NCBI GenBank assembly: GCA_002269645.1
Contig: NIVC01001753.1
Span: forward strand, 124,001-188,000
From: Macrostomum lignano
Taxonomy: Eukaryota
Length of the DNA stretch: 64,000 bases
Direction of reading: 5' to 3'
The first letter of the stretch is position 1, and each line of letters opens with the position of its first letter. The notes beneath the pieces were generated by a model, which saw only the letters and a program-made list of their open reading frames with translations, did no database searches and was not told the DNA's origin. Shown piece by piece: positions 14,020-63,262 of this stretch. The translations under genes were made by a program, and so were the position numbers.

Positions 14020-14259
14020 TTAGGGTTTTGGTTAGGGTTAGAATTTTGACAGGAGATTTTTTAAGATTTCAAGGCTACATGTAGCTTATTAAAAATACGT
14101 GTATTGCATTTCTTTGGCTCCCCAACGGGGGGCGTAGATTGCTAGTAAATGCTAAAGCTGAAAAGCAGTTATACAGCCCTATTTTTCTGAATTTAGAGTT
14201 TGCGAATGCTTAGGATGAAAAGCATAGTTTAACACGCAGAGACTTGCAACAAGACTCAC

Positions 14260-14473
14260 CTAGCTGTCGTCCCCTCTTTGCGGCCGGAGGCTGAGACTGC
14301 TGCTGCTGCTGCTGTGAGGGGCCTGCTCGCCCCCACAAAGCTGAAATAGCGGCTTCAGCGGCTGGGCGTTTTGATGCCATTCTTTGCTTCTGCTTCTTCT
14401 TCTGCGGCTGCTGCTGCTGCGATTGCGGCTGATGCTGCTGTGATTGCGGCTGTGACTGCTGATGCCGATACTC
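14260..14473 (-). CDS. Gln-rich exon with basic NLS-like segments, from a spliced gene running toward the repeat boundary (copy 2 at 58723-58936)
   Basis: Acceptor TTGCAG and donor GTGAGT flank EYRHQQSQPQ...KKKQKQRMASKRPAAE...AKRGRQL. Confidence 0.45.
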
Positions 14474-14758
14474 CTGCAATCTCCTTTATGTACCCCTGTA
14501 GGAAGGGATGCCGCAAACAGAATGCGCGCGGTGTGCATTATTTCTCTTTCCCCTGTACTGCATTTGCAAATTAGTGTACAATTGTACACTCAGACCCCAA
14601 CTTGGTATAGAAAAGTTGGGGTCTGAAAATACCCCATCATTTTCGTTCTCGCACAGATTGTAATTGGATCTCAGTGTATCTAGCCAACCGGTAGTGCTGT
14701 AGGAACGAAAAATGCAGACTGCAGTCTCACCTCCTCAGAGTACAGTCGCTTTCGCAGG

Positions 14759-14766
14759 TATATAAA
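14759..14766 (+). promoter_or_regulatory. TATA box (TATATAAA)
   Basis: GGTATATAAAGG upstream of an AAAATG start. Conserved as GGTATATAGAGG at about 119-130 and repeated at about 59222. Confidence 0.45.
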
Positions 14767-15511
14767 GGACGACGCTGGAGTTGAAATTTTTCAGAATTCT
14801 CGCTCTGACACTCTCAGCATCAGCAGCAGCATCAGTCGCTCTCTTTCTCCGTGAAACTCTGTTAAAATGTCTATTCCACTTGTTGATGAAATATTTTAAA
14901 ATTGTTCTTCTTCTGGTCTCTCACTTCTATGGCTCTGTCTATTTCAAATATCAATGTGAGAGCCAAATAACTGAGGCGGCGGATTCAACTGACTTTTCCT
15001 GATGATGCAAAACACTTGATAGTAACTTACAGACCGTTGTATTTGATGGTCACAATCTCGAGATGTTATCTTACAAAATATGATGTCTAAGATGGAATTC
15101 CAAATAAGAAGCTCGTTTTGTTCGAGTTCCAAGGGGTTTCCAAGTTTTCGGGTGAACCGAAGGTTCAGTCTATTGTGGAACGTGGGTTGGTTGTTGTTTT
15201 GGTTTTAGTGAGTCAATTTATCAGTTTTAGTATTTGGGTTGAGACCCTAACTGTGTCAATCAAAAGTAGTCAGAGTAGGTATGTTAGAATAGCGAGAAGA
15301 GAGAAGAGAGGCGAAAGAGAGGCGAGGCAAGGCGAGCTCCTTGCTTGGTTAAAATGGGCTTTTATAGTACTTTTCAGTCTTGATCGCATTGGATAGTACA
15401 TAGCTGCTTTTCATTGGTTGAGGTTGGGGTCGTGTCCCCAGCTTTTGCTAGTTGGAGCGCATTCATTGGTTAAAATACATTCAATCTGGATGGGAACTTT
15501 CTAGAGCCAAA

Positions 15512-16222
15512 ATGTGTCACTTCATTGAAAATTACGTGGTGCGCAAGCCCACATTCGATACTGATCGAGAACTGATTAAGATTCGGCGTTTCTACACCGA
15601 CAAGAAAGGCAACTACAAGCACGGTTTCCAAGGCGTGTTTCTGACTCGCATCGAGTGGCAGCATCTTAAGCGGGCGCGCTGGATTATTGAGTCTCTGCGG
15701 ATCCGTGACTACTCTCGTCATGAACGGTTTCAGCTGGGCGAGAGCGGTCGCAAGATTCTGGAAGTGAAAAACAACCAGATTTGGCTGCATCGCAACAACC
15801 CGGCCGACTCCGACAACGGATGCTGCGATGAGGGCGAGCGCTGGAAATACTCAATCAAGTTGAGCATTAAATTGTGGACTGCTCTAATGGATGCTGACGT
15901 TGATTCGCTGTTTGTCTCGCAGTCGCCGCCACCGCTGCCAAGACGACGGCTTCAGAGCCAGCATCGTGGTTCAACGGCAGCAGCAGCAGCAGCAATGATG
16001 ATAGACGGTAAGGGTAGCCGCTGCCGCCGCAGTGCTGACACCCCGCCGCCGATTGAACTGCAGCCGCCGCCGGTGAAGAAGCTTCCCACTACGGCTACGG
16101 CTGGCAGCGAAGGCGACGGCAGCAGCGGCAACGGCAGCTACAAGTGGTGGTACTCGTTTCCTCCGGACTCGACTGAGGAATTCCAAGCTATGCCTGGGAG
16201 GCGGGGCGCATATATTGGTTAA
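15512..16222 (+). CDS. Tandem PC4/Sub1-like domain protein with Pro/Ala-rich tail, 236 aa, intronless
   Basis: IKIRRFYTDKKGNYKHGFQGVFLTRIEWQHLK resembles the PC4 core [32 protein letters not shown]. A second unit is RFQLGESGRKILEV...SIKLSIKLWTALMD. Three ATTGG (CCAAT) boxes lie upstream. Confidence 0.7.
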   Translation: MCHFIENYVVRKPTFDTDRELIKIRRFYTDKKGNYKHGFQGVFLTRIEWQHLKRARWIIESLRIRDYSRHERFQLGESGRKILEVKNNQIWLHRNNPADSDNGCCDEGERWKYSIKLSIKLWTALMDADVDSLFVSQSPPPLPRRRLQSQHRGSTAAAAAAMMIDGKGSRCRRSADTPPPIELQPPPVKKLPTTATAGSEGDGSSGNGSYKWWYSFPPDSTEEFQAMPGRRGAYIG

Positions 16223-16309
16223 ACTAAAGGGGAACGGATAAGGCTTGCTACTCCTACGCGACTCTGTCAATTCAACCATTCCCGAACCGCGACTGCTCGA
16301 CAACCCATT

Positions 16310-16498
16310 ATGGCTATGCAAGCCCAACTCGAAAGGACGAGGAAGACGGCGGATCAATGGTGGTGGCTCTGTCGGCGGTTGTGGGAACTCGAGTTGCTGC
16401 TGGAGGACGGCTGGCCCCGTGACACGAAGCGGGGTGCTCGGCGGGGTTCACGGCTCCTGTCAGCGTTCAGACGGCTAATCACACCCGTCCGCAAGTGA
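16310..16498 (+). CDS. Small hypothetical protein, 62 aa (copy at 60773-60961)
   Basis: ATG-initiated, GC-rich ORF directly after the PC4-like gene. No motif recognised. Confidence 0.3.
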   Translation: MAMQAQLERTRKTADQWWWLCRRLWELELLLEDGWPRDTKRGARRGSRLLSAFRRLITPVRK

Positions 16499-16816
16499 CC
16501 TCAGTGCCAAATCAAGGAATCAGTGACCCAAGTCACTGAGCCGGTCTCTGAGCTCGGTTTCAATGATAACCTTAGAGAACAACTCACAGAAGCAGTGACA
16601 ATTTAGGTCATTCATTCAAACTACTGGGCTAAAAAACTCGGCTATATTTTGCAGTCATCTGGAATATTGCATTCGATCTGAAAATTTTAAACTGAGTTTG
16701 AATACTCGTAAATAAAGCATTTACAGAAATGCAATTAGCTTGTATTTAGTTTTTTTAAAACAAAGAAGCAAACGGATTGTTCGGGTTCTTCTCGATAGCC
16801 ACAGTCACGTGCATTC

Positions 16817-16987
16817 TCATCGAGCCTTGGTGAAGTAGCACCTCAGCAGCCTCTCTATGATCTCGACAGCCGAGTTGTACAAGTCCATGTCGAAGCTGGA
16901 GCTCTGCGAGTCGGAGAACACCGTGGCCGACTCTGTGACTCGGATCTGCGGACTGTGGGGCAGAGGCGGCAGGGGCTGATGAACTGG
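16817..16987 (-). CDS. Probable terminal exon (PVHQPLPP...FDMDLYNSAVEIIERLLRCYFTKAR*), not the frame in the ORF track
   Basis: CTTAG acceptor, 57 codons to TGA, strong G/C bias at third positions in this frame. Confidence 0.4.
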   Translation of the reverse strand, partial: PVHQPLPPLPHSPQIRVTESATVFSDSQSSSFDMDLYNSAVEIIERLLRCYFTKAR

Positions 16988-17011
16988 CTAAGCTGGGATA
17001 GATGGGCTTAT

Positions 17012-17302
17012 GGGATCTGGGAGGCTGGCCCAGCAACTGAGCATCTGGGAGGCTGGCCCAGCAACTGAGGATCTGGGAGGCTGGCCCAGCAACTGAGGAT
17101 CTAGGAGGCTGGCCCAGCAACTGAGGATCTGGGAGGCTGGCCCAGCAACTGAGGATCTGGGAGGCTGGCCTAGTAACTGAGGATCTAGGAGGCTGGCCCA
17201 GCAACTGAGGATCTGGGAGGCTGGCCTAGCAACTGAGGATCTGAGAGGCTGGCCCAGCAACTGAGGATCTGCGAAGCTGGCCCAGCAACTGAGGATCTGG
17301 GA
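17012..17302. repeat. 28-bp minisatellite (GAGGATCTGGGAGGCTGGCCCAGCAACT) x ~10 (copy at 61475-61765)
   Basis: Directly visible. It produces a 28-aa period in the spurious ORFs. Confidence 0.95.
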
Positions 17303-18798
17303 GACTGTAAGTGTAAAACAAACATGTTTTATTAATAAAGAAACTTTATAAGGGTTCACAGGAACAAGAGCTTTATGAGCTACTCAATTTATGATAATTG
17401 AGTAAATTGTAAGTTTTTCTGCAATATAATTGTAAGAATGCCAAGTACAAAAATGTCCTATCACTCTACTGACACAAGTAGCATTTGAAGCTTTTATATC
17501 TTGCTTATATATCTAGCTTATAATCCTAGACAAGCCTAGAATTACATGCATGGGAACTATATATGTTATATATACAGCAAGTCATAATTCATACAATAAG
17601 TCATAAGCCAAGTCATTTTAAGCCTCAGTTTTTGTGCCAAATTGAACTTTGTAGGGCTTAGATTCCGCATTGCCGCGAGGTTCAAACATTATTTGGCAGC
17701 TAGGGGGTGGGGTATCCCAATATAGCAAATTGAAATTGTCATGCAAAATTAGATTGTAAGAATTGTCACTCCATAAATGTATACTACCCTACTTATACAA
17801 GTAGCACTAGAGCGCATCATAATTGAATAAATTGTAAGTTTTTCTGCAATATAGTTGTAAGAATGTCAAGTACAAAAATGTCCTATCATTCTACTGACAG
17901 AATTAGCATTTGAAGCTTATAAAAATTAAACAAATTGTAATTTTCCACCAAATAAAATTGCAATTTGAGTCAATTGCCTCAAGAAAATTGCAAGGTTTAA
18001 AATTTTTGCACAATTTGGGGGGTCATGTGAACAATGCACACCTGCCTGCCTGACCTGTCGGTGTCGGCAATAGCAAATTTGCCAGCAACGTCATTGACTT
18101 GTATTGACTTGGCGTGAAGGAATCCACAAGTTCCATCAGAGTCTCCCCAGTGTTCCGTGTGCCAGAATGATATATTTTTGGTAGCTATGATAGCTATGCC
18201 ATGATAAATTGGTATGGCTATATTTAGTACATTACTAAAACTTTTAGAGCTACAATTTAGCTGATATTTGGTCTTCTCTTTGCTTTAGCTTTATTTAAAA
18301 TTTTAGCTTTCCCTTACTAATATAGTGTAGTTTTCAGAAAATTCTAGATTTTTTAAAACAAAAAGCTGCGCAAGTTTGCAAGCATAGGGCCTATGAATAT
18401 TTTATTATTTTATACACAAAATGCTTTTTATACAAAAAATTGTCTTTGAGTATTATAACCTAATATTAGCTCAATTTTTATACCAAAGAGCTTGCTTGCA
18501 CAATAGCCATGCACATATACCTATTATTGAATTGCATGCATGGCACAGCAGCTAGCAATTGATTTAATCAATTTTAATCAATTGAGAATTGGGGTCCTTG
18601 AATCAATGCATTGGCATTGGCAAACCTAATTAAAAATTATTGTTATTAGATTGTTTTATAATGTTATATCGCACATAAAGAATAAAACTAAAATTATAAC
18701 TATTATTATAAATATAAACCTACAATAGGTGTAATCTGTGCTAATTCCATCAATGGGACATTGGCCTAGAATAACTAGTAGAAAGAAGTAGAAAGATA

Positions 18799-18945
18799 CT
18801 GCTGAGGGGCAGAATAGGCTGAGGGGCTTTTCGCTCCACGAGGGGCTTCTCGCCCCTCCCGCGAAAAGCCCCTCCCAAGGTGCCATGAGCCCCTCGCAAA
18901 GTGCGAGAAGCCCCTCGCCATAAGAATATATGTATTTTGAAAAAA
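18799..18945 (+). repeat. Left imperfect terminal inverted repeat rich in GAGGGGC/GCCCCTC
   Basis: 18901-18938 is the reverse complement of 58324-58361 with 2 mismatches in 38. Ends read CTGCTGAGGGGC versus CTGCATCCGAGGGGC. Confidence 0.75.
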
Positions 18946-19220
18946 AATTTTAACTGAGATTTCTTCTTTTTATTTTGTTTCTTTTCTTACTAAAGCGCTT
19001 TAAATGTGGTGCTTTCACATTTTAAGGATGTCAGTAAGGTGTCTATAATCAAACGATAAGTTTTTTAATTTTTATGTTTGCTTGAGTTTATATACGCTAC
19101 AGACATGCTATTAAATAACTAAATAATAAATTAAACTAAATAATCTAACTAACTAAACTAACTAAACTAAACTAACTAAATTAAATAAAATATTAAATAA
19201 CATGTTACAGACATGCTATT

Positions 19221-21650
19221 TATTACAGACATGCTATTTGGACTACTATATAAGTAGCTCCATTTGCGCATGCAAATGTCGTATCCGTTTTTTACAAAAA
19301 TCTAAAGAAAATATTTTCTAAATATGTGCTCTTAAATGTGCTTTTAAATGTCCGAACTATTAGTCGGGGCCTAAAGAAGTATAATTTACTGGTCAAAGTA
19401 ATTTATTTAGTTTCAGAAACAAAACTTTGGGGCTTTAAGTCAAGCCATCAATATGTGCGACTTCTGGCACACTGAAAGATGGACTTGTTATGACTTGCTC
19501 TCGACTACTTATATAGCCAATGTTTGAAACAAGATTTGCTTTATACTTAAAGCGCACAATATCCTAGTAGTTGTCAAACAGTTTCATGCAGCCAAGTGAA
19601 TCTCGACTTGGCTGTTATGTGCTCTATGATGTTTGCCTATACAGTGAGTCGTAAGGGTTTCAACTCAGAGGTTAGGTACTATTGGGGCATTCAAGTGCAT
19701 GCGCTTGTTCTTAACCATAGAAATCCATATCATACACTTTATTATGAGTAGCGCAATGAACGTTTGAGAGTCCTGAAGGTAACTCTTACCCTCGTCAGAT
19801 CCACCGACGAATGCCTATGTCGAAGTAGTAAGTTTTTCAGGGGACATGCAATATCTGCAATATGTGCGACTTCTGGCACGCTAAAAGATGAAGTTGTTCT
19901 GAGTTGCTCTCGACTGCTTATATGGCCAATATTTGGAACAAGAGTTGCTTTATTCTTCAGAAGCTGAAAGTGAGAGTCGAAGCCATCTACCTAACAGTCT
20001 CTTATTAAAAGTTCTGGCCATATTCTATCACTAGGTCTCTACATAGCTAATGTGTCACTTTTGGCAGCTTTTTAGTCCTGCATTTTTATGCTCAATAAAG
20101 CTGGAAATTATTTTCAGTGATAAATAAACAGATTTACTAACCTTTAAGCTGTTTTCCTGTGAATAGTTTTACATGGCTAAGAAATATTTCGGATAAAAAA
20201 ACTTTATTACAGACATGCTATTTGGACTACTATATAAGTAGCTCCATTTGCGCATGCAAATGTCGTATCCGTTTTTTACAAAAATCTAAAGAAAATATTT
20301 TCTAAATATGTGCTCTTAAATGTGCTTTTAAATGTCCGAACTATTAGTCGGGGCCTAAAGAAGTATAATTTACTGGTCAAAGTAATTTATTTAGTTTCAG
20401 AAACAAAACTTTGGGGCTTTAAGTCAAGCCATCAATATGTGCGACTTCTGGCACACTGAAAGATGGACTTGTTATGACTTGCTCTCGACTACTTATATAG
20501 CCAATGTTTGAAACAAGATTTGCTTTATACTTAAAGCGCACAATATCCTAGTAGTTGTCAAACAGTTTTCATGCAGCCCAGTGAATCTCGACTTGGCTGT
20601 TATGTGCTCTATGATGTTTGCCTATACAGTGAGTAGTAAGTTTTTCAGCTCAAAGGTTAGGTACTATTGGGGCATTCGAGTGCATGCGCTTGTTCTTAAC
20701 CATAGAAATCCATATCATACACTTTATTATGAGTAGCGCAATGAACGTTTGAGAGTCCTGAAGGTAACTCTTACCCTCGTCAGATCCACCGACGAATGCC
20801 TATGTCGAAGTAGTAAGTTTTTCAGGGGACATGCAATATCTGCAATATGTGCGACTTCTGGCACGCTAAAAGATGAAGTTGTTCTGAGTTGCTCTCGACT
20901 GCTTATATGGCCAATGTTTGGAACAAGAGTTGCTTTATTCTTCAGAAGCTGAAAGTGAGAGTCGAAGCCATCTACCTAACAGTCTCTTATTAAAAGTTCT
21001 GGCCATATTCTATCACTAGGTCTCTACATAGCTAATGTGTCACTTTTGGCAGCTTTTTAGTCCTGCATTTTTATGCTCAATAAAGCTGGAAATTATTTTC
21101 AGTGATAAATAAACAGATTTACTAACCTTTAAGCTGTTTTCCTGTGAATAGTTTTACATGGCTAAGAAATATTTCGGATAAAAAAACTTTATTACAGACA
21201 TGCTATTTGGACTACTATATAAGTAGCTCCATTTGCGCATGCAAATGTCGTATCCGTTTTTTACAAAAATCTAAAGAAAATATTTTCTAAATATGTGCTC
21301 TTAAATGTGCTTTTAAATGTCCGAACTATTAGTCGGGGCCTAAAGAAGTATAATTTACTGGTCAAAGTAATTTATTTAGTTTCAGAAACAAAACTTTGGG
21401 GCTTTAAGTCAAGCCATCAATATGTGCGACTTCTGGCACACTGAAAGATGGACTTGTTATGACTTGCTCTCGACTACTTATATAGCCAATGTTTGAAACA
21501 AGATTTGCTTTATACTTAAAGCGCACAATATCCTAGTAGTTGTCAAACAGTTTTCATGCAGCCCAGTGAATCTCGACTTGGCTGTTATGTGCTCTATGAT
21601 GTTTGCCTATACAGTGAGTAGTAAGTTTTTCAGCTCAAAGGTTAGGTACT
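19221..21650. repeat. 985-bp tandem array, about 2.5 copies, containing satellite module A
   Basis: Unit starts at 19221, 20205 and 21190. Duplicate ORFs at 19764 and 20749. Confidence 0.95.
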
Positions 21651-21767
21651 AGACAGACAGACAGACATATATAGATAGACAGACAGATAGAGATAGACAG
21701 ACGGATAGAGAAGAGATAGACAGACAGATAAAGATAGACTCCCGGAACCCGTCTGGACTGCGTCCTC

Positions 21768-23459: not shown

Positions 23460-23875
23460 TGTAACGGCATTTTCGAGCGGCCTGAGCAGTTTCGCCGACA
23501 GCTGGAACCATCTGCAGCAACCCTAATGGTCGACGCCGCGCTGCGTAGCAACAGGCTGAACGAGAATTCGGCCCCTGGACCTGCCTAAACACCTGGGCAC
23601 GCGGTTAATCTGAAAGAAGAACAAAAGCGAGACTGCTAGGCAACCGGCACTGGGCATACTCCCGGCCAGTACGCGTCGCGCCCACCTGTGTGCACACGGC
23701 CCTAGCGACTCCCAGACCTGGAGAGAACGAGTAGCAACAACTGACTCGGCGATCCGAGGTAAATTTCAGCAGATAAGCGACTGGCAAGCAACGGCATTTT
23801 CGAGCGGCCTGAGCAGTCTCGCCGACAGCTGGAACCATCTGGAGCACCCCTAATGGTCGACGCCGCGCCCTGTGA
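23460..23875. repeat. GC-rich ~330-bp repeat family C (further copies at 26413-27025)
   Basis: Near-identical mirror ORFs at 23605, 26430 and 26788. Confidence 0.9.
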
Positions 23876-23877
23876 AG

Positions 23878-26800
23878 TAACGCTCACCCTCGTCAGGCCT
23901 ACCGACGTATGCCTATGTCAGAGTAGTAAGTTTTTCAGGTGACATGCAATATCTGCCATGTCATGACTACACTGTCTTTCATGTCTCTTATAAGAATGTT
24001 TAAAGTCAATTGTTACTCGGAGAATGTATCAAAGGAACTTATAAAAGTATTTTAGTAGAGATATGAGGGGCTGTTCGCCCCTTACGAGGGGCATTTCGCC
24101 CCTCATGATTATGAGCCTATCTTGACTACTTAATATCGTCGCTCAGTAGAGTGATAAGCGTAATAAAATGACTGAGCGCACTCTTGCGATAAAGCAAAGA
24201 TATGATGTAAATTTCCCTGTCTTTTTATATTATTTCTGGAATCTGAAGAGAGAATAATGCTCCAGGCATCTACTCTAGAAAATCAGTACACTTTCTTAGA
24301 AGGTCGGTATACTGATATGAAGTTTCTTCACTTTAGCTTCTGGCCATCCTAGGTTTTGGTAGTCGGACTTTCAGTTGTGTAAACATTCTGAAATCGTGTA
24401 TAGACCTCCTAAAGCGAAAAATATCTTAAGTAGTTGTCAAACATTTTTCTATGCGGCCAAGTGAATCTCGACTTGGCTGTTGTGCGCTCTATTATGCTTG
24501 CCCATACAGTTAAGTAGTAAGTTTTTCAGCTCAAAGGTTAGGTACTATTGGGGCATTCAACTGCATGCTCTTGTTCTTAACCATACAAGTCCATGTTATA
24601 CACTTTATTATGAGTAGCGCAATGAACGTTTGAGAGTCCTGAAGGTAACTCTCACCCTCGTCAGGAGAACCGACGTATGCCTATGTCAGAGTAGTAAGTT
24701 TTTCAGGGGACATGCAATATCTGCCGTGTCTTGACCATACTGTCTTTAATGCCTCGTATAAGAATGTTTAAAGTCAATTGTTACTCTGAGAATATATCAA
24801 GGAACTTATAAAAGTATTTTAGTAGAAATATGAGGGGCTATTCGCCCCTTACGAGGGGCATTTCGCCCCTCATAATTATAAGCCCATCTTGACTACTAAA
24901 TATCGTCGCTCAGTAGAGTGATAAGCGCATCAAAATGACTGAGCGGACTCGGTCATACTGATATGACGTTACTTCACTTTAGCTTCTGGCCATCCTAGGT
25001 TTTGGTAGTCGGACTTTCAGTTGTGTAAAAATTCTGAAATCGTGTATAGACCTCCTAAAGCGAAAAAATATCCTAAGTAGTTGTCAAACATTTTTCTATG
25101 CGGCCAAGTGAATCTCGACTTGGCTTTTATTTGCTCTTTGATGTTTGCCAATATAGTGAGGAGTAAGATTTTTAACTCAGAGGTTAGGTACTATTGGGGC
25201 ATTCAACTGCATGCTCTTGTTCTTAACCATACAAGTCCATGTTATACACTTTATTATGAGTAGCGCAATGAACGTTTGAGAGTCCTGAAGGTAACTCTCA
25301 CCCTCGTCAGGAGAACCGACGTATGCCTATGTCAGAGTAGTAAGTTTTTCAGGGGACATGCAATATCTGCCGTGTCTTGACCATACTGTCTTTAATGCCT
25401 CGTATAAGAATGTTTAAAGTCAATTGTTACTCTGAGAATATATCAAGGAACTTATAAAAGTATTTTAGTAGAAATATGAGGGGCTATTCGCCCCTTACGA
25501 GGGGCATTTCGCCCCTCATAATTATAAGCCCATCTTGACTACTAAATATCGTCGCTCAGTAGAGTGATAAGCGCATCAAAATGACTGAGCGGACTCTTGC
25601 AATAAAGCAAAGATATGATATAAATTTCCCTGTCTTTTTATATTATTTCTGGAATCTGAAGAGAGAATAATGCTCCAGACCTATACTCTAGAAAATCAGT
25701 ACACTTTCTAAGAAGGTCGATATACTGATATGAAGTTTCTTCACTTTAGCTTCTGGCCATCCTAGGTTTGTGTATTCGGACTTTCAGTTGTGTAAATATT
25801 CTGAAATCGTGTATAGACCTCCTAAAGCGAAAAATATCCTAAGTAGTTGTCAAACATTTTTCTATGCGGCCAAGTGAATCTCGACTTGGCTGTTGTGTGC
25901 TCTATTATGCTTGCCAATACAGTTAAGTAGTAAGTTTTTCAGCTCAAAGGTTAGGTACTATTGGGGCATTCAACTGCATGCTCTTGTTCTTAACCATACA
26001 AGTCCATGTTATACACTTTATTATGAGTAGCGCAATGAACGTTTGAGAGTCCTGAAGGTAACTCTCACCCTCGTCAGGAGAACCGACGTATGCCTATGTC
26101 AGAGTAGTAAGTTTTTCAGGGGACATGCAATATCTGGCATGTTATGACTATACTGTCTTTATTGCCTCTTATAAGAAGGTTTAAAGTCAATTGTTACTCT
26201 GAGAATATATCAAGGAACTTATAAAAGTATTTTAGTAGAAATATGAGGGGCTATTCGCCCCTTACGAGGGGCATTTCGCCCCTCATAATTATAAGCCCAT
26301 CTTGACTACTAAATATCGTCGCTCAGTAGAGTGATAAGCGTAATAAAAAGACTGAGCGCACTCTTGCGATAAAGCAAAGATATGATATAAATTTCCCTGT
26401 CTTTTTATATTAAACACCTGGGCACGCGGTTAATCTGAAAGAAGAACAAAAGCGAGACTGCTAGGCAACCGGCACTGGGCATACTCCCGGCCAGTACGCG
26501 TCGCGCCCACCTGTGTGCACACGGCCCTAGCGACTCCCAGACCTGGGGAGAACGAGTAGCAACAACTGACTCGGCGATCCGAGGTAAATTTCAGCAGATA
26601 AGCGACTGGCAAGCAACGGCATTTTCGAGCGGCCTGACCAGTCTCGCCGACAGCTGGAACCATCTGCAGCAACCCTAATGGTCGACGCCGCGCCGCGTAG
26701 CAACAGGCCGAGCGAGAAGTTTGGCCCCGGAACTCCCTAAACACCTGGGCACGCGGTTAATCTGAAAGAAGAACAAAAGCGAGACTGCTAGGCAACCGGC

Positions 26801-27770: not shown

Positions 27771-28204
27771 GCAAAAAAGCAAAGCTGTAAGAACGTTCAG
27801 TGTAAGCGAAGCTATAAGAGAAATACTTGTACTTATTAAGGTATACTTGAGAAATACTTGTACTTACAGAGTTTGCATACAAATTATAAACATTTTAGTT
27901 GCCTTGACGTGAGTTGCATAGATCGGCAAAAAAGCAAAGCTGTAAGAACGTTCAGTGTAAGCGAAGCTATAAGAGAAATACTTGTACTTATTGAAGTATA
28001 CTTAAGAAATACTTGTACTTACAGAGTTTGCATACAAATTATAAACATTTTAGTTGCATAGACGTGAGCACAGTATTTAATTGCGTAAAAGTATACAGGA
28101 ATAAAAATAGAAAATTAGAAAAAGATGAAAAGTAAACTTGGAAGAAATACAAGCAAGAATAATAGGTGCAAATACACATTTTCGGATGAAGATCGCGACA
28201 ATAA

Positions 28205-31754: not shown

Positions 31755-31793
31755 TGGCCCTGGGCTCTAGCCAGATATTGCATTTAATACAGT

Positions 31794-49370: not shown

Positions 49371-49652
49371 TTAAAAATGATTAATTTTTTTATTGTTTAT
49401 TGTTTAAAACAAACTATTATTTTTTGTTTGAGGTATACCTATGTAGAATAAATAATTTTAATTTATATGATTATAAATAAAAATAATAATTCTGAAAATG
49501 AAAAATAAATATATAAACTGCTTAAACGTTTGGAGCTTCTTCTAGATTCTTTTAATAAATATTTTAGCCTGGTGATTAGATTCATTAGGTATAAATTGGA
49601 TATACAAAGAATGAGTATTTAGATAACTATAATTTCAATTTTTTTTCAGATT

Positions 49653-52754: not shown

Positions 52755-54444
52755 ATGCGAGCTTTGGAATCAGAAAACGCCTGGCTAAAAGAAATGCTGC
52801 GAATTCAGCACGTCCTCATTATAAGCCAACGCAGGACCCTAGAATCGGTTCAAGGTTCTCCAAACCCAAAAATGCCTAGTGTAAGCCGTAAAATTTTAGA
52901 TACCAATTCTTAATTCCATATTTTAACTAAGCATTCATAGTCTTTCTGCGAAAGCTTTAAATAAAAAAAGTAGTCAATTTACAAACTTATAAAAAAGTTT
53001 ATAAGCACAATCAAGTCGTTTAGTGTTCAGTGTCCAATAATCTTTTTATTATCCAACACGCTTTTTCCAAGTAAGTTTTCCATGCTTTTAAGGGCAAATG
53101 AATCAAAATTACATGATAACTTTAGCTAAATATATTTATATAACCTCAAATATAACCTGTCCAGCCAGCTGAAGGTGCCGGTGCCGGTGCTGCCGGTGCC
53201 ACTATGACGGCCGCCTACACTGCCACATCCGCTGCTACCGCCACCTCCGCTGCTACTTCCACCACCGCCACCTCCGCTGCTACCTCCACCACCACCAGCT
53301 CCGCTGCTGCCGCTGTAAGTATTTTGTATCTGCTAGTATTCACGTTTACTTACTTGTAGCAGATCTATATAAGCGGTATTCAGCACGCTATGCAGAAAGA
53401 TAGCATAGAAACCCTGGCGCAAATTTTACGAGCTCGTAGTATAGTATAGCATGGCATAGCATGATACCTTGCCCCAGATTCTACACAGGCCTACGATATC
53501 GTATAGATGTAAATTAGCAAGATGTACATTAATGTTCATTCGATCTAAATACTACTCAATATAGACACCGGACGCGCGTCGGTCCGTTATTAATGGATCC
53601 TTGCCTGGAGGGCCATTATTCGATGTATGTAATAAATATTTATTGTCTGGTTTAATTGTTATTTTTCGTCTTTTATCTACTACTTTTAAAGTACTTTTAC
53701 TTATACCCGTATTATTTTCTTTTATACCTTTTGTATTTTGAGTCCTAAATCGTAAGTCCATAAGCTCTTAACCTCGTAGTTGAGGTTATACTTTAAGTCT
53801 CTACATGCTCATACAAGCCTCATACATACTTTAATTGAAAAAATATAGGTAGACCTCGATGCCTCATTCGGCAGTGGCGACGTCGGCAGTGGCAGTGGCA
53901 ACGACGAAGGCCCTGCCGACGTCACTATCCGCGGCCCTACGCGGGGAGCTAGCTTAAAGGGTGCCCGAAAGGCAGCAGGACAAGCAGAAGTCCTCCGGCG
54001 GCTCCTTAACAACGATGACTCAGCAGTAACTGTTAGTGCTACCCGGAGCAAAGGCCGCGGAGCTTTTGCTGCGTGTGCCCTCGCCAGAGGAGCATACGTA
54101 TGCGAGTATGCAGGTAAGCTTCTTAGCAAGACGGAATCCGACACTCGCTACGTCGAGCTCGCCGAGGCCGACAAAGACACGTTTTTTTTATTTAACTTTG
54201 ATTTCAATGGCCGGGAATATGCTATCGACGCCACGGACACCGATCGCGTCGGTTCTTAAATCATTCTCGGACAAAAAAAAACTGCCGAGTAGTCACCACC
54301 GGTGTCCAATGTCCGGGAGGCGTGATTCGACCGGCCCTATATTTCCAGACTACAAAATATGTTCCGAAGGGACGTGAACTTTTATTCGACTACGGCCCTA
54401 GGGACGCGGAAACTCTGGAGAGTTGTAAGTGGCTGAACGATTAA
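52755..54444 (+). pseudogene. SET8/PR-Set7 (H4K20 methyltransferase)-like SET domain gene, frameshifted just before NHS; missed by the ORF track
   Basis: Phase-0 exons 52740/52755-52880, 53165-53314 and 53849-54444. SKGRGAFA...VCEYAGKLL...FLFNF...YAIDAT, then a frameshift at ~54254-54258, then LNHS...ELLFDYG...WL*. AATAAA at 54445. Confidence 0.85.
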
Positions 54445-54903
54445 AATAAAACTCGTTCTAAAAATATTCCCGTCAGAAATCAATACAAGATAAAGCTTAA
54501 ACATACTTAAAAAATCGATTTAGATCACTTACAATTCTTTACTTAATAGCTTAATTGCTTAGTTGCTTAATACTTAATTACTTCATGGCTGATTTATTGC
54601 TCATAATTTTTTTCATTGACCTCCTTATATTTTCTTTTTTAATTTTTGGTTTGCTTAGTACTTCGTATTTTACTTTGCTTACAATTTTGTGTTGCTTTGC
54701 TTATCATTTTGCTTATTGGCTTGCTTTCCGCATTATTTTGCTTATTATTTTGCTTTTTGGTTTGATAATTGAAGATTTTCTTTCCCTAGTGTGCCATGCT
54801 TCGAAAAAAATAACATGGTCAATAATGAGATAAGAATGTCGCAGCATTTCCAAGAAATAAATTCGATTACTTAATTCGAAACTAATTAATGTAAAGTTCC
54901 CGG

Positions 54904-57415
54904 TCTTTTTATATTATTTCTAGAACCTGAAGGGAGAATAATGCTCCAGACATATACTCTAGAAAATCAGTACACTTTCTAAGAAGGTCGGTATACTGAT
55001 ATGAAGTTTCTTCACTTTAGCTTCTGGCCATCCTAGGTTTTGGTAGTCGGACTTTCAGTTGTGTAAACATTCTGAAATCGTGTATAGACCTCCTAAAGCG
55101 AAAAATATCTTAAGTAGTTGTCAAACATTTTTCTATGCGGCCAAGTGAATCTCGACTTGGCTGTTGTGCGCTCTATTATGCTTGCCCATACAGTTAAGTA
55201 GTAAGTTTTTCAGCTCAAAGGTTAGGTACTATTGGGGCATTCAACTGCATGCTCTTGTTCTTAACCATACAAGTCCATATTATACACTTTATTATGAGTA
55301 GCGCAATGAACGTTTGAGAGTCCTGAAGGTAACTCTCACCCTCGTCAGGAGAACCGACGTATGCCTATGTCAGAGTAGTAAGTTTTTCAGGGGACATGCA
55401 ATATCTGTCGTGTCTTGACCATACTGTCTTTAATGCCTCGTATAAGAATGTTTAAAGTCAATTGTTACTCTGAGAATATATCAAGGAACTTATAAAAGTA
55501 TTTTAGTAGAAATATGAGGGGCTATTCGCCCCTTACGAGGGGCATTTCGCCCCTCATAATTATAAGCCCATCTTGACTACTAAATATCGTCGCTCAGTAG
55601 AGTGATAAGCGTATCAAAATGACTGAGCGGACTCGGTCATACTGATATGACGTTACTTCACTTTAGCTTCTGGCCATCCTAGGTTTTGGTAGTCGGACTT
55701 TCAGTTGTGTAAAAATTCTGAAATCGTGTATAGACCTCCTAAAGCGAAAAAATATCCTAAGTAGTTGTCAAACATTTTTCTATGCGGCCAAGTGAATCTC
55801 GACTTGGCTTTTATTTGCTCTTTGATGTTTGCCAATATAGTGAGGAGTAAGATTTTCAACTCAGAGGTTAGGTACTATTGGGGCATTCAACTGCATGCTC
55901 TTGTTCTTAACCATACAAGTCCATGTTATACACTTTATTATGAGTAGCGCAATGAACGTTTGAGAGTCCTGAAGGTAACTCTCACCCTCGTCAGGAGAAC
56001 CGACGTATGCCTATGTCAGAGTAGTAAGTTTTTCAGGGGACATGCAATATCTGCCGTGTCTTGACCATACTGTCTTTAATGCCTCGTATAAGAATGTTTA
56101 AAGTCAATTGTTACTCTGAGAATATATCAAGGAACTTATAAAAGTATTTTAGTAGAAATATGAGGGGCTATTCGCCCCTTACGAGGGGCATTTCGCCCCT
56201 CATAATTATAAGCCTATCTTGACTACTTAATATCGTCGCTCAGTAGAGTGATAAGCGTAATAAAATGACTGAGCGCACTCTTGCGATAAAGCAAAGATAT
56301 GATATAAATTTCCCTGTCTTTTTATATTATTTCTGGAATCTGAAGAGAGAATAATGCTCCAGACCTATACTCTAGAAAATCAGTACACTTTCTAAGAAGG
56401 TCGATATACTGATATGAAGTTTCTTCACTTTAGCTTCTGGCCATCCTAGGTTTGTGTATTCGGACTTTCAGTTGTGTAAACATTCTGAAATCGTGTATAG
56501 ACCTCCTAAAGCGAAAAATATCCTAAGTAGTTGTCAAACATTTTTCTATGCGGCCAAGTGAATCTCGACTTGGCTGTTGTGCGCTCTATTATGCTTGCCC
56601 ATACAGTTAAGTAGTAAGTTTTTCAGCTCAAAGGTTAGGTACTATTGTGGCATTCAACTGCATGCTCTTGTTCTTAACCATACAAGTCCATGTTATACAC
56701 TTTATTATGAGTAGCGCAATGAACGTTTGAGAGTCCTGAAGGTAACTCTCACCCTCGTCAGGAGAACCGACGTATGCCTATGTCAGAGTAGTAAGTTTTT
56801 CAGGGGACATGCAATATCTGGCATGTCATGACTATACTGTCTTTATTGCCTCTTATAAGAAGGTTTAAAGTCAATTGTTACTCTGAGAATATATCAAGGA
56901 ACTTATAAAAGTATTTTAGTAGAAATATGAGGGGCTATTCGCCCCTTACGAGGGGCATTTCGCCCCTCATAATTATAAGCCCATCTTGACTACTAAATAT
57001 CGTCGCTCAGTAGAGTGATAAGCGTAATAAAAGGACTGAGCGCACTCTTGCGATAAAGCAAAGATATGATATAAATTTCCCTGTCTTTTTATATTATTTC
57101 TGGAGTCTGAAGAGAGAATAATGCTCCAGACATCTACTCTAGAAAATCAGTACACTTTCTAAGAAGGTCGATATACTGATATGACGTTACTTCACTTTAG
57201 CTTCTGGCCATCCTAGGTTTTGGTAGTCGGACTTTCAGTTATGTAAATGTGTTCAAAGTCAATTGTTACTCAGAGAATATAGGAAAGGAACTTATAAAAG
57301 TGTTTTAGTAGAGATAGGAGGGGCTATTTGCCCCTCAAGAGGGGCATTTCGCCCCTCATAATTTTAAGCCCATCTTGACTACTAAATATCGTCGCTCAGT
57401 AGAGTGATAAGCGGA
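54904..57415. repeat. Right array of satellite module A; 54904-57095 is a near-identical direct copy of 24220-26411
   Basis: Identical ORFs at 25081 and 55765 (offset 30684). Confidence 0.92.
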
Positions 57416-58400
57416 TAATTCAGATCTAAATCTGAATCTCACCCTATTGGAAAAGAGGCACCCTGAGATCTCACTGTAGGATTGTAAGATTAGATAGTCC
57501 GTATAATATATGTTAGATGTGACCCCTATCTCATACCCGAAAAACGTATCTAAAGGTAAATCTCACCTAATCGGAAAAGTCTCACCCTGAGATCTCGGAT
57601 TAGGATGGTATAGAAAATCCTAATGACAAGGTGACCTCTATCTCATACCTTGGAAAAGCGTCGAAAGTAAATGTCACTCTATTAAGCTTTTTGGGTTAAT
57701 TCCCCTCCTGACCGCCTACGGAGGTCAATGGACCTCAAATAGTGGCTTAGGTTGATAGAGAAACGAAAGGATTTATAGATTGTATTGCGGAAAAAAAAGA
57801 AAAAAATACATGTATTCTTATGGTGAGGGGCTTCTCGCACATGGCGAGGGGCTTCTCGCGCCCCCTGGAGGGTTTAATAATTTTAAGCCCATCTTGACTA
57901 CTAAATATCGTCGCTCAGTAGAGTGATAAGCGGATAATTCAGATCTAAATCTGAATCTCACCCTATTGGAAAAGAGGCACCCTGAGATCTCACTGTAGGA
58001 TTGTAAGATTAGATAGTCCGTATAATATATGTTAGATGTGACCCCTATCTCATACCCGAAAAACGTATCTAAAGGTAAATCTCACCTAATCGGAAAAGTC
58101 TCACCCTGAGATCTCGGATTAGGATGGTATAGAAAATCCTAATGACAAGGTGACCTCTATCTCATACCTTGGAAAAGCGTCAAAAGTAAATGTCACTCTA
58201 TTAAGCTTTTTTGGGTTAATTCCCCCCCTGACCGCCTACGGAGGTCAAGGGACCTCAAATAGTGGCTTAGGTTGATAGAGAAACGAAAGGATTTATAGAT
58301 TGTATTGCGGAAAAAAAAAGAAAAAAATACATGTATTCTTATGGTGAGGGGCTTCTCGCACATGGCGAGGGGCTTCTCGCGCCCCCTGGAGGGGCGTTTC
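57361..58400. repeat. ~519-bp tandem duplication of the right subterminal region, including part of the inverted end
   Basis: CAGATCTAAATCTGAATCTC at 57421 and 57940. Confidence 0.92.
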
Positions 58401-58481
58401 GCAAGGTAAGGGGCGAAGAGCCCCTCGCCGCGAGAACCCCCTCGTGAGGGGGTTAGTCCGCCAGGAGCCCCTCGGATGCAG
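58324..58481 (-). repeat. Right imperfect terminal inverted repeat
   Basis: See the left repeat. It ends ...GCCCCTCGGATGCAG one base before direct-repeat copy 2. Confidence 0.75.
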
Positions 58482-58482
58482 A

Positions 58483-61400
58483 TTAGGGTTTTGGTTAGGG
58501 TTAGAATTTTGACAGGAGATTTTTTAAGATTTCAAGGCTACATGTAGCTTATTAAAAATACGTGTATTGCATTTCTTTGGCTCCCCAACGGGGGGCGTAG
58601 ATTGCTAGTAAATGCTAAAGCTGAAAAGCAGTTATACAGCCCTATTTTTCTGAATTTAGAGTTTGCGAATGCTTAGGATGAAAAGCATAGTTTAACACGC
58701 AGAGACTTGCAACAAGACTCACCTAGCTGTCGTCCCCTCTTTGCGGCCGGAGGCTGAGACTGCTGCTGCTGCTGCTGTGAGGGGCCTGCTCGCCCCCACA
58801 AAGCTGAAATAGCGGCTTCAGCGGCTGGGCGTTTTGATGCCATTCTTTGCTTCTGCTTCTTCTTCTGCGGCTGCTGCTGCTGCGATTGCGGCTGATGCTG
58901 CTGTGATTGCGGCTGTGACTGCTGATGCCGATACTCCTGCAATCTCCTTTATGTACCCCTGTAGGAAGGGATGCCGCAAACAGAATGCGCGCGGTGTGCA
59001 TTATTTCTCTTTCCCCTGTACTGCATTTGCAAATTAGTGTACAATTGTACACTCAGACCCCAACTTGGTATAGAAAAGTTGGGGTCTGAAAATACCCCAT
59101 CATTTTCGTTCTCGCACAGATTGTAATTGGATCTTAGTGTATCTAGCCAACCGGTAGTGCTGTAGGAACGAAAAATGCAGACTGCAGTCTCACCTCCTCA
59201 GAGTACAGTCGCTTTCGCAGGTATATAAAGGACGACGCTGGAGTTGAAATTTTTCAGAATTCTCGCTCTGACACTCTCAGCATCAGCAGCAGCATCAGTC
59301 GCTCTCTTTCTCCGTGAAACTCTGTTAAAATGTCTATTCCACTTGTTGATGAAATATTTTAAAATTGTTCTTCTTCTGGTCTCTCACTTCTATGGCTCTG
59401 TCTATTTCAAATATCAATGTGAGAGCCAAATAACTGAGGCGGCGGATTCAACTGACTTTTCCTGATGATGCAAAACACTTGATAGTAACTTACAGACCGT
59501 TGTATTTGATGGTCACAATCTCGAGATGTTATCTTACAAAATATGATGTCTAAGATGGAATTCCAAATAAGAAGCTCGTTTTGTTCGAGTTCCAAGGGGT
59601 TTCCAAGTTTTCGGGTGAACCGAAGGTTCAGTCTATTGTGGAACGTGGGTTGGTTGTTGTTTTGGTTTTAGTGAGTCAATTTATCAGTTTTAGTATTTGG
59701 GTTGAGACCCTAACTGTGTCAATCAAAAGTAGTCAGAGTAGGTATGTTAGAATAGCGAGAAGAGAGAAGAGAGGCGAAAGAGAGGCGAGGCAAGGCGAGC
59801 TCCTTGCTTGGTTAAAATGGGCTTTTATAGTACTTTTCAGTCTTGATCGCATTGGATAGTACATAGCTGCTTTTCATTGGTTGAGGTTGGGGTCGTGTCC
59901 CCAGCTTTTGCTAGTTGGAGCGCATTCATTGGTTAAAATACATTCAATCTGGATGGGAACTTTCTAGAGCCAAAATGTGTCACTTCATTGAAAATTACGT
60001 GGTGCGCAAGCCCACATTCGATACTGATCGAGAACTGATTAAGATTCGGCGTTTCTACACCGACAAGAAAGGCAACTACAAGCACGGTTTCCAAGGCGTG
60101 TTTCTGACTCGCATCGAGTGGCAGCATCTTAAGCGGGCGCGCTGGATTATTGAGTCTCTGCGGATCCGTGACTACTCTCGTCATGAAAGGTTTCAGCTGG
60201 GCGAGAGCGGTCGCAAGATTCTGGAAGTGAAAAACAACCAGATTTGGCTGCATCGCAACAACCCGGCCGACTCCGACAACGGATGCTGCGATGAGGGCGA
60301 GCGCTGGAAATACTCAATCAAGTTGAGCATTAAATTGTGGACTGCTCTAATGGATGCTGACGTTGATTCGCTGTTTGTCTCGCAGTCGCCGCCACCGCTG
60401 CCAAGACGACGGCTTCAGAGCCAGCATCGTGGTTCAACGGCAGCAGCAGCAACAGCAATGATGATAGACGGTAAGGGTAGCCGCTGCCGCCGCAGTGCTG
60501 ACACCCCGCCGCCGATTGAACTGCAGCCGCCGCCGGTGAAGAAGCTTCCCACTACGGCTACGGCTGGCAGCGAAGGCGACGGCAGCAGCGGCAACGGCAG
60601 CTACAAGTGGTGGTACTCGTTTCCTCCGGACTCGACTGAGGAATTCCAAGCTATGCCTGGGAGGCGGGGCGCATATATTGGTTAAACTAAAGGGGAACGG
60701 ATAAGGCTTGCTACTCCTACGCGACTCTGTCAATTCAACCATTCCCGAACCGCGACTGCTCGACAACCCATTATGGCTATGCAAGCCCAACTCGAAAGGA
60801 CGAGGAAGACGGCGGATCAATGGTGGTGGCTCTGTCGGCGGTTGTGGGAACTCGAGTTGCTGCTGGAGGACGGCTGGCCCCGTGACACGAAGCGGGGTGC
60901 TCGGCGGGGTTCACGGCTCCTGTCAGCGTTCAGACGGCTAATCACACCCGTCCGCAAGTGACCTCAGTGCCAAATCAAGGAATCAGTGATCCAAGTCACT
61001 GAGCCGGTCTCTGAGCTCGGTTTCAATGATAACCTTAGAGAACAACTCACAGAAGCAGTGACAATTTAGGTCATTCATTCAAACTACTGGGCTAAAAAAC
61101 TCGGCTATATTTTGCAGTCATCTGGAATATTGCATTCGATCTGAAAATTTTAAACTGAGTTTGAATACTCGTAAATAAAGCATTTACAGAAATGCAATTA
61201 GCTTGTATTTAGTTTTTTTAAAACAAAGAAGCAAACAGATTGTTCGGGTTCTTCTCGATAGCCACAGTCACGTGCATTCTCATCGAGCCTTGGTGAAGTA
61301 GCACCTCAGCAGCCTCTCTATGATCTCGACAGCCGAGTTGTACAAGTCCATGTCGAAGCTGGAGCTCTGCGAGTCGGAGAACACCGTGGCCGACTCTGTG

Positions 61401-63262
61401 ACTCGGATCTGCGGACTGTGGGGCAGAGGCGGCAGGGGCTGATGAACTGGCTAAGCTGGGATAGATGGGCTTATGGGATCTGGGAGGCTGGCCCAGCAAC
61501 TGAGCATCTGGGAGGCTGGCCCAGCAACTGAGGATCTGGGAGGCTGGCCCAGCAACTGAGGATCTATGAGGCTGGCCCAGCAACTGAGGATCTGGGAGGC
61601 TGGCCCAGCAACTGAGGATCTGGGAGGCTGGCCTAGTAACTGAGGATCTAGGAGGCTGGCCCAGCAACTGAGGATCTGGGAGGCTGGCCTAGCAACTGAG
61701 GATCTGAGAGGCTGGCCCAGCAACTGAGGATCTGCGAAGCTGGCCCAGCAACTGAGGATCTGGGAGACTGTAAGTGTAAAACAAACATGTTTTATTAATA
61801 AAGAAACTTTATAAGGGTTCACAGGAACAAGAGCTTTATGAGCTACTCAATTTATGATAATTGAGTAAATTGTAAGTTTTTCTGCAATATAATTGTAAGA
61901 ATGCCAAGTACAAAAATGTCCTATCACTCTACTGACACAAGTAGCATTTGAAGCTTTTATATCTTGCTTATATATCTAGCTTATAATCCTAGACAAGCCT
62001 AGAATTACATGCATGGGAACTATATATGTTATATATACAGCAAGTCATAATTCATACAATAAGTCATAAGCCAAGTCATTTTAAGCCTCAGTTTTTGTGC
62101 CAAATTGAACTTTGTAGGGCTTAGATTCCGCATTGCCGCGAGGTTCAAACATTATTTGGCAGCTAGGGGGGTGGGGTATCCCAATATAGCAAATTGAAAT
62201 TGTCATGCAAAATTAGATTGTAAGAATTGTCACTCCATAAATGTATACTACCCTACTTATACAAGTAGCACTAGAGCGCATCATAATTGAATAAATTGTA
62301 AGTTTTTCTGCAATATAGTTGTAAGAATGTCAAGTACAAAAATGTCCTATCATTCTACTGACAGAATTAGCATTTGAAGCTTATAAAAATTAAACAAATT
62401 GTAATTTTCCACCAAATAAAATTGCAATTTGAGTCAATTGCCTCAAGAAAATTGCAAGGTTTAAAATTTTTGCACAATTTGGGGGGTCATGTGAACAATG
62501 CACACCTGCCTGCCTGACCTGTCGGTGTCGGCAATAGCAAATTTGCCAGCAACGTCATTGACTTGTATTGACTTGGCGTGAAGGAATCCACAAGTTCCAT
62601 CAGAGTCTCCCCAGTGTTCCGTGTGCCAGAATGATATATGTTTGGTAGCTATGATAGCTATGCCATGATAAATTGGTATGGCTATATTTAGTACATTACT
62701 AAAACTTTTAGAGCTACAATTTAGCTGATATTTGGTCTTCTCTTTGCTTTAGCTTTATTTAAAATTTTAGCTTTCCCTTACTAATATAGTGTAGTTTTCA
62801 GAAAATTCTAGATTTTTTAAAACAAAAAGCTGCGCAAGTTTGCAAGCATAGGGCCTATGAATATTTTATTATTTTATACACAAAATGCTTTTTATACAAA
62901 AAATTGTCTTTGAGTATTATAACCTAATATTAGCTCAATTTTTATACCAAAGAGCTTGCTTGCACAATAGCCATGCACATATACCTATTATTGAATTGCA
63001 TGCATGGCACAGCAGCTAGCAATTGATTTAATCAATTTTAATCAATTGAGAATTGGGGTCCTTGAATCAATGCATTGGCATTGGCAAACCTAATTAAAAA
63101 TTATTGTTATTAGATTGTTTTATAATGTTATATCGCACATAAAGAATAAAACTAAAATTATAACTATTATTATAAATATAAACCTACAATAGGTGTAATC
63201 TGTGCTAATTCCATCAATGGGACATTGGCCTAGAATAACTAGTAGAAAGAAGTAGAAAGATA
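58483..63262 (+). repeat. 4.78-kb direct repeat, copy 2
   Basis: Near-identical to 14020-18798. Confidence 0.97.
59975..60685 (+). CDS. Tandem PC4-like protein, copy 2
   Basis: Identical to 15512-16222 except one A->T residue and one synonymous change. Confidence 0.7.
   Translation: MCHFIENYVVRKPTFDTDRELIKIRRFYTDKKGNYKHGFQGVFLTRIEWQHLKRARWIIESLRIRDYSRHERFQLGESGRKILEVKNNQIWLHRNNPADSDNGCCDEGERWKYSIKLSIKLWTALMDADVDSLFVSQSPPPLPRRRLQSQHRGSTAAAATAMMIDGKGSRCRRSADTPPPIELQPPPVKKLPTTATAGSEGDGSSGNGSYKWWYSFPPDSTEEFQAMPGRRGAYIG

Follow-up and report, generated by a model that had tools for sequence, protein, structure and literature searches.

A stretch of 64,000 nt from the flatworm Macrostomum lignano (GenBank assembly GCA_002269645.1, contig NIVC01001753.1, positions 124,001 to 188,000 of the forward strand; this whole stretch is called the window below, and all coordinates count from its first letter) holds two near-identical 4.78-kb direct repeats, A1 and A2, and between them a single 39.7-kb block, B, whose two ends are inverted with respect to each other and form hairpins. 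With the left flank called x and the right flank y, the order is x-A-B-A-y. Both breakpoints of the duplication coincide with the two mutually inverted termini of B. The reading that we favour, tentatively and with somewhat less than even confidence, is that x-A-B-A-y arose by aberrant hybrid-end transposition between sister chromatids. B would then be a discrete, large element of a non-autonomous or unconventional mobile type, with imperfect inverted hairpin ends of about 140 nt.

Direct repeats and the inverted ends of B

A BLAST self-comparison of the whole window was used to define the repeats. A1 lies at 14020-18798 and A2 at 58483-63262, both on the forward strand, and the pair is the dominant direct repeat of the window. 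Their alignment has 4,780 columns with seven mismatches, one gap and 99.83% identity, and the repeat period is 44,463 nt. These values bear out a preliminary description of the locus, which had reported near-identical copies with about eight differences (they are seven substitutions and one indel in a run of G) and a period of 44.46 kb. The differences are scattered over 14672-18176. The single indel is a G5/G6 homopolymer run, and one of the substitutions alters one amino acid in the main open reading frame (ORF) of A, a PC4-like frame at 15452-16219 in A1 and 59915-60682 in A2 whose match is marginal (Pfam E 9e-6, PDB E 0.02). Homology between the copies ends abruptly at both edges, where the immediately adjacent bases differ. 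A opens on a short TTAGGG-like tract and closes with a short simple repeat, and no reverse transcriptase, transposase or terminal repeats were found in it. With seven substitutions in 4,779 nt, the earlier proposal that the duplication is a very recent event is supported at the level of sequence divergence.

The nature of these differences also bears on whether the duplication is real. Seven substitutions without random indels argue for two real sequences, and not for one sequence placed twice. In an assembly artefact, two alleles or subgenome copies of A would have been put in series, or two loci would have been joined via the arrays of B. PMC10733133 describes M. lignano as a polyploid of recent origin whose repeat-rich genome is difficult to assemble, and the retrotransposon nested in B has M. 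lignano proteins as its best named matches. The 2.2-kb internal repeats of B (24205-26412 vs 54889-57096, direct orientation, 98.9% identity) could mislead an assembler, and the lone indel between A1 and A2 is a homopolymer length difference. Against this, the window is free of N gaps, the B|A2 and A2|y junctions have no repeat in common that could give a false overlap, and the sequences next to A1 are unlike those next to A2 on either side, so that the two copies cannot be taken as simple alleles. Even a chimeric B would leave one A copy beside a left end and the other beside a right end of the same end family. We regard an artefact as quite unlikely.

The left inverted end of B spans 18799-18940 (forward strand) and the right inverted end 58324-58482 (reverse strand). 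The left 200 nt of B align with the reverse complement of the right 200 nt at a local score of 116, where 500 shuffles gave a mean of 15.9 with a standard deviation of 2.2 and a maximum of 30, and the best inverted partner of the left end across the whole window is the right end. The robust alignment pairs 18821-18938 with 58324-58443 at about 79% identity with several indels, and is best over 51-60 nt, at 87-92%. The preliminary description had the direct repeats exactly bracketing a segment with inverted ends. The inverted ends are real, but the robust match starts at 18821 and ends at 58443 and so stops short of the junctions, leaving the outermost 22 nt on the left and 39 nt on the right (58444-58482, motif-like and poorly aligned) outside it. 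These outer stretches have no more in common than CTGC and a single 7-nt stem word of the hairpins, with a 3-nt indel.

The ends of B also score 61 in direct orientation, because the hairpin word is palindromic; part of the apparent inverted similarity is thus a palindromic motif. In its 14-nt form (18840-18853), this word has 35 matches in the window at no more than two mismatches, where 0.19 would be expected. All 35 lie within 18821-58473 and none elsewhere in the window, and one of them, at 32280, stands outside the repeat units of B. Folded as a single strand, the left end (142 nt) forms a multi-arm hairpin with a free energy (dG) of -39.4 kcal/mol and a z of -6.65, and the right end (58340-58482, 143 nt) does so with -45.7 kcal/mol and a z of -5.47. 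No comparable fold is formed by either extremity of A or by y (z -0.6 for the start of A, -0.75 for its end and -1.7 for y). Apart from a hairpin word of 15-21 nt, roughly the last 90 nt at either end of B are unique in the window, and a DNA pattern made from the end sequence found no match in metagenome or viral contigs.

Junctions and the origin of the duplication

The left flank x (11351-14019, forward strand) consists of a 23-bp satellite and two units that open with TTAGGG tracts, at 12627-13096 and 13096-13686, with a pure tract at 13409-13515. One further TTAGGG-headed unit makes up the first 110 nt of A1, and A starts at the first base of its tract. Because A opens with a further unit of the repeat that fills x, the x|A1 boundary looks like an ancestral contiguity. 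If it is ancestral, then both novel junctions, B|A2 and A2|y, flank A2.

The A copies end sharply at the right boundary given in the preliminary description, but homology between the two sites resumes a short distance further on, at the 8-mer AATAGGCT, which sits 15 nt past the end of A1 and 16 nt past the end of A2. This 8-mer occurs twice in the 64 kb when both strands are searched, at 18813-18820 and 63278-63285, and by shuffling the chance of an 8-mer at such matching offsets is about 6e-4. Its presence at both sites suggests that A1-A2 homology resumes beyond a non-homologous patch. On the left, patch P1 (18799-18812, 14 nt, forward strand) is an imperfect inverted copy of 58465-58481 and is followed by the 8-mer. 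On the right, patch P2 (63263-63277, 15 nt, forward strand) repeats the final 5 nt of A, has GCAT twice and is followed by the 8-mer; it has no homology to P1, and its composition looks like templated filler. The robust inverted repeat of B starts directly after the 8-mer, at 18821. The 8-mer may therefore be ancestral flank, in which case the duplicated unit would be A plus patch plus 8-mer and B proper would begin at 18821. Alternatively, it may be a short templated copy of B's left end that was placed in the A2|y junction during repair. Under either reading of the 8-mer, there was processing of DNA ends at A2|y. Base 58482 is part of neither the A2 repeat nor the symmetric tip of B. No short target duplication was found around B (the left flank ends in ...GAAAGATA and the right flank starts with ATTAGGG), no microhomology at either novel junction, and no short att-like core at the junctions.

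Under hybrid-end transposition, B would first have stood between A and y, directly to the right of A, in the order x-A-B-y. After replication, one sister chromatid would have supplied the left end of B and the other its right end, the two being cut together as a hybrid element. This hybrid would have been inserted 4.8 kb upstream, at the x|A boundary, which is the start of the TTAGGG tract that opens A, and the freed donor flanks (the end of A, and y) would then have been united by end-joining. One product would be x-A-B-A-y, with a single B, both of its ends flush with A and no target duplication, and the reciprocal product would be x-B-y. The enzyme may have been supplied in trans, or may be encoded by a recombinase-like gene in B.

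Hybrid element insertion between sister chromatids is presented in PMC2775673 and PMC3887531 as a known route to duplications and deletions of flanking DNA beside a retained P element. At the present locus, A1 adjoins the left end of B and A2 its right end, and A2 is followed by y and not by B; this orientation matches the hybrid-end model. The missing target duplication around B would be expected if one original flank had been exchanged. The A2|y junction, which in the model is the repaired donor site, has the filler-like 15-nt patch, the 5-nt copy of the end of A and the shared 8-mer, and no clean duplicated target. Hybrid-end transposition may in this way account for the coincidence of the breakpoints with inverted termini, for the missing target duplication and for the messy A2|y junction, an account that seems plausible while falling a little short of an even chance. 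We infer both the sister-chromatid mechanism and the mobility of B as a whole from this arrangement.

The junctions can also be read as the outcome of break-repair copying at the hairpin blocks, with no transposase involved: a dispersed duplication by synthesis-dependent strand annealing or of the type seen in microhomology-mediated break-induced replication. The hairpin or cruciform at the right end of B would break, the broken end would prime at the TTAGGG tract of A1 on the sister or the same molecule, A would be copied over 4.8 kb, and copying would stall in the left-end hairpin block before end-joining to y. Both ends of B are strongly structure-forming, A starts with a G-rich, telomere-like tract, and the A2|y patch is filler-like with short copies of nearby sequence, all of which agree with such copying. 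The 8-mer at A2|y has its other copy 15-22 nt inside the left end of B, which would suit a short run of copying into B, and the orphan base at B|A2 and the fact that no transposase was found fit as well. Repair copying has no need of mutually inverted ends, however, yet the ends of B are inverted; neither junction has microhomology; and a 22-nt run into B predicts that P2 equals P1, whereas P2 differs. On balance repair copying is considered unlikely.

As the preliminary description had noted, A-B-A is a formal product of circle integration as well as of aberrant transposition; the third origin proposed there, a tandem concatemer, here of a 44.46-kb unit, is not supported, since the 738 nt visible after A2 are not B and the hairpin word is confined to 18821-58473. 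In a Campbell-type event, a 44.46-kb circle made of B and a copy of A would have recombined homologously with a chromosomal A, and the reverse recombination would regenerate the circle. The difference between P1 and P2, enclosed as they are by shared sequence, fits two slightly different copies of A and its right flank, and B contains a candidate tyrosine-recombinase-like gene. What such an event requires is an earlier, unexplained circle in which A lay exactly between the inverted tips of B. Neither an att-like core nor a tRNA or another of the usual targets was found, nothing points to a circle, and the recombinase assignment failed every profile test. We consider a Campbell-type origin very improbable.

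Two independent events are the most improbable of the origins considered: either a tandem A-A duplication into whose junction B was later inserted, or an A that was itself mobile or retro-copied beside both ends of B. In favour of this, A belongs to a small multi-copy family with relatives at 1-553 and 4207-4374, and it has a telomere-like tract at its start and a short simple repeat at its end. Random insertion within about 20 nt of an A|A junction in 9.6 kb has a probability of about 0.004, however, neither B nor either copy of A is enclosed by a target duplication, and A has none of the features of a mobile sequence that were looked for.

Several observations weigh against hybrid-end transposition itself. 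The mobility of B is drawn from one locus, and its inverted ends are about 79% identical with tips that align poorly. Clean strand transfer would predict neither base 58482 nor a difference between P1 and P2. The families of DDE transposases, Rep/helicases and integrases are absent from the 150 ORFs of B that were scanned, and the ORFs of the window and their close relatives were not found in the protein collections searched. The derivation of a repeat-element-repeat product rests on what is established for P elements. Finally, B could be ordinary repeat-rich chromatin (arrays, a nested retrotransposon and host-like gene pieces) between two hairpin blocks.

Comparison with known elements and the orphan recombinase-like gene

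The closest parallel to the locus is P-element hybrid element insertion, which Gray et al. 1996 and Preston et al. 1996 reportedly described together with its flanking duplications and deletions. As in those events, one element stands between direct copies of one flank with its ends flush, there is no target duplication at the element, and one distal junction is end-joined. Unlike the P element, which has 31-bp inverted repeats, B is 39.7 kb long with imperfect multi-hairpin ends of about 140 nt and no recognisable transposase, and unlike the P-element cases the event here is reconstructed from one sequence and was not observed, nor did a reciprocal deletion come to light.

Reversed-ends transposition of Ac/Ds elements also involves a class II element and yields direct duplications, from kilobases to megabases, with breakpoints exactly at the element ends. 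There, each repeat copy is initiated by a transposon copy, giving TE-A-TE-A, where TE is the transposable element (Zhang, Zuo and Peterson 2013, PMC3744419). This predicts the wrong structure for the window, which has one B and no B-type word outside 18821-58473.

The Cryptons and other tyrosine-recombinase elements share with B an intron-containing gene with the C-terminal spacing R…H-x-x-R…H…Y; many short inverted-arm words in B resemble the architecture of recombinase sites, and a circle is a conceivable intermediate. Cryptons are a few kb long, with terminal direct repeats of 4-6 bp and no terminal inverted repeats or long direct repeats (Kojima and Jurka 2011, PMC3212892). B was rejected as a Crypton: it has inverted ends, 39.7 kb and no short terminal direct repeats, and the protein has no match to a tyrosine-recombinase or DUF3504 profile.

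Foldback/Galileo-type transposons, which are associated with rearrangements (PMC2775673), resemble B in having ends made of short, repeated, self-complementary words and internal arrays built from subterminal sequence. Unlike their long symmetric inverted repeats, the arrays of B are direct, and just about 120-140 nt are inverted. Fungal Starships and Mavericks/Polintons match B in size (tens of kb), defined ends and host-like cargo genes. Unlike these giant cargo elements, B has no polymerase, capsid, DDE integrase or DUF3435-type recombinase, and its candidate recombinase gene lies in mid-element.

To assess the gene content of B, 150 stop-to-stop ORFs with a length of 55 amino acids or more were scanned against Pfam, the nested retrotransposon being excluded. 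No DDE transposase, integrase, Rep/helicase, polymerase, capsid, packaging ATPase or gag family was found among them. An element with long terminal repeats (LTRs) was rejected on termini, flanks and gene content, in agreement with the earlier statement that the repeats lack LTR hallmarks: A starts with TTAGGG and ends with GATA and not TG…CA, the outer flanks (..TTGAAT and GGCATA..) share nothing, the reverse transcriptase and RNase H of B belong to the nested retrotransposon, and the scanned ORFs hold no integrase or gag. Measured against cut-and-paste transposons with terminal inverted repeats, B has such repeats, imperfect at about 79%, and no short target-site duplication and no transposase family. 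A Helitron or Helentron was rejected for want of a Rep or helicase family; the minus strand of B starts with TC after an A but ends in ..GCAG, not CTRR. An integrated virus or Polinton/Maverick was rejected as well, with no hallmark genes in the ORFs and nothing in PHROGs for the orphan gene described below. Duplication of a flank in association with transposon ends is a known kind of event, and the element B is unclassifiable.

The preliminary description had placed a recombinase-like gene in B. A candidate does exist, on the reverse strand at 38283-40193, and it carries a suggestive spacing of residues, but all profile searches and an hhalign comparison came back empty. The gene is predicted to have three exons in the same frame (40193-39214, 39141-38789 and 38665-38283), separated by GT..AG introns of 72 and 123 nt, and the frame is unbroken under this splice model. 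An exhaustive HMMER search with the 327-aa ORF of the first exon found three relatives among 1.84 billion cluster representatives, and these come from the unannotated public sequencing runs SRR24204725, SRR31628392 and SRR31628394. The best of them, P0121 (780 aa, E 7.5e-29, 30% identity), is encoded by one uninterrupted ORF on a 2.6-kb contig of a public sequencing run. In a tblastn search P0121 spans the first intron exactly as predicted, which supports the splice model and shows a family that is expressed elsewhere, or intact there at the least.

Members of this orphan family had no Pfam match and no meaningful PHROGs match. The protein from the window had no NCBIfam match, its PDB sequence and profile searches were empty, and its spliced form had no homologue in a word-indexed protein collection. 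An hhalign comparison of the family with lambda Int, Cre and four other phage recombinases gave a probability of 0.15%, a weak negative because the family profile is shallow (effective number of sequences, Neff, 1.5). An AlphaFold single-sequence model of P0121 reached a predicted local distance difference test score (pLDDT) of 42.8, which is too poor for a fold search. The sole positive test for recombinase identity was a motif test for the tyrosine-recombinase spacing [HK]xxR, 20-28 residues, [HW], 8 residues, Y. In lambda Int and Cre this pattern coincides with the residues known to be catalytic, and it matches four of six reference recombinases. It lies on conserved columns in all three orphan family members examined, with H at the first position in two and K in one. 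As background, the window ORFs gave one match in 14,993 residues, and 2.3% of shuffles matched. Judged by this catalytic spacing in its C-terminal part, the orphan gene is a candidate tyrosine-recombinase-like gene at roughly even odds.

If that assignment were correct, a further reading would be that B is an intact giant cargo-carrying element of about 40 kb, of an undescribed flatworm class, which is moved by the orphan tyrosine-recombinase-like protein, with the hairpin words as its recombination or binding sites and the duplication as a by-product. We find this strongly doubtful.

Contents of B and the surroundings of the locus

B (18799-58482, 39,684 nt) is a composite, repeat-rich block, present in a single copy in the window. 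From left to right on the forward strand, its arrays begin with about 2.5 tandem copies of a 985-bp unit (19219-21651), which are 98.5-99.4% identical in pairwise BLAST comparisons and have 310 bp in common with the 767-bp units. An array of 767/646-bp units follows at 23463-27768, each unit with a pair of hairpin words, and an isolated stretch of the same family at 40470-41734 is about 91% identical to 25106-26373. BLAST places the right-hand 767/646-bp arrays at 54889-57430, and two 521-bp units that are 99% identical lie at 57358-57872 and 57877-58393. The arrays at both sides of B share one orientation, and the terminal 120-140 nt alone are inverted.

A full-length non-LTR retrotransposon (long interspersed element, LINE) of 5.9 kb is nested in B at 29729-35631 on the forward strand, with paralogous modules on either side of it at 27773-28325 and 35717-36022. 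Its ORF1 (30192-31754) and ORF2 (31794-35534, with endonuclease, reverse transcriptase and RNase H domains) are both open. A perfect 13-bp target duplication (29716-29728 and 35632-35644) encloses the element and marks it as a later nested insertion, which looks very recent. The best named relatives of ORF2 in UniRef are from M. lignano, at 55-77% identity over 29-37% of the query, and two further unnamed partial matches have 96-97% identity.

The remainder of B includes an inverted duplication at 41785-52145, whose arms (42624-43427 and 50295-51150) are 97-99% identical; the right arm is enlarged by a 582-bp tandem, and older pieces of the arms begin at 41785. Paralogous C2H2-like ORFs lie on opposite strands within it, at 44623-45072 (reverse) and 49623-50315 (forward). 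Beyond it on the forward strand are a Myb/SANT-domain reading frame (52182-52472, Pfam E 3.5e-10) and a piece of a SET-domain gene (53849-54441) with one frameshift, whose closest solved relatives are KMT5A/SETD8 (E 5e-7).

Across the window, short GT..AG introns, satellites and CAG/poly-Q tracts are present. No tRNA genes and no Rfam families were found in it, nor a tRNA or structured-RNA integration target. Exact-protein look-ups of the window ORFs gave no match at other loci, and the PC4-like ORF had no homologue in the word-indexed protein collection. The right flank y, of which just 738 nt are visible (63263-64000), has no similarity to B.

On the left, an older partial paralogue of A lies at 1-553 on the forward strand, with 88-92% identity to positions 620-867 and 1506-1834 of A. 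It abuts a LINE RNase H fragment at 558-1127, which cuts it off, and long CAG/poly-Q coding-like tracts follow the fragment at 1173-1300 and 1660-1710. A protein-level relative of A is found at 4207-4374. With these relatives, A belongs to a small multi-copy family in this region. Within A, a 28-bp minisatellite of 10.5 copies (17013-17307 and 61476-61770) has equal copy number in A1 and A2, with one substitution between them.

The left part of the window has further repeats. The 23-bp satellite of x occupies 11351-12571 in about 53 copies with 89% matches and reappears at 13905-14006. Interstitial TTAGGG arrays at 13409-13515 and 13770-13870, and also at 14020-14041 and 58483-58504 at the starts of A1 and A2, stand at the front of a repeated unit of about 470 bp, and the region may resemble a subtelomere or be left over from events at a chromosome end. 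Two tandem copies of a 375-bp unit with 100% matches (10419-11168) make up a second, smaller and very fresh duplication in the window. A 520-nt inverted repeat (5465-5984 and 6431-6950, 97% complementary, arms 446 nt apart) is a foldback or long-terminal-inverted-repeat structure unrelated to B.

If hybrid-end transposition is the correct reading, the locus would be a natural and very recent case of a transposon-like element directly duplicating a gene-bearing neighbour, in an animal and outside flies and plants; the PC4-like gene in the duplicated stretch belongs to a small local family. The locus would moreover point to an element of unclassified type, with ends structured as hairpins and with an orphan recombinase-like gene, in a genus of model flatworms whose genomes are highly repetitive and difficult to assemble. 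If the duplication was a repair event instead, the hairpin blocks would act as duplication breakpoints. Under either reading, the locus offers exact junctions.

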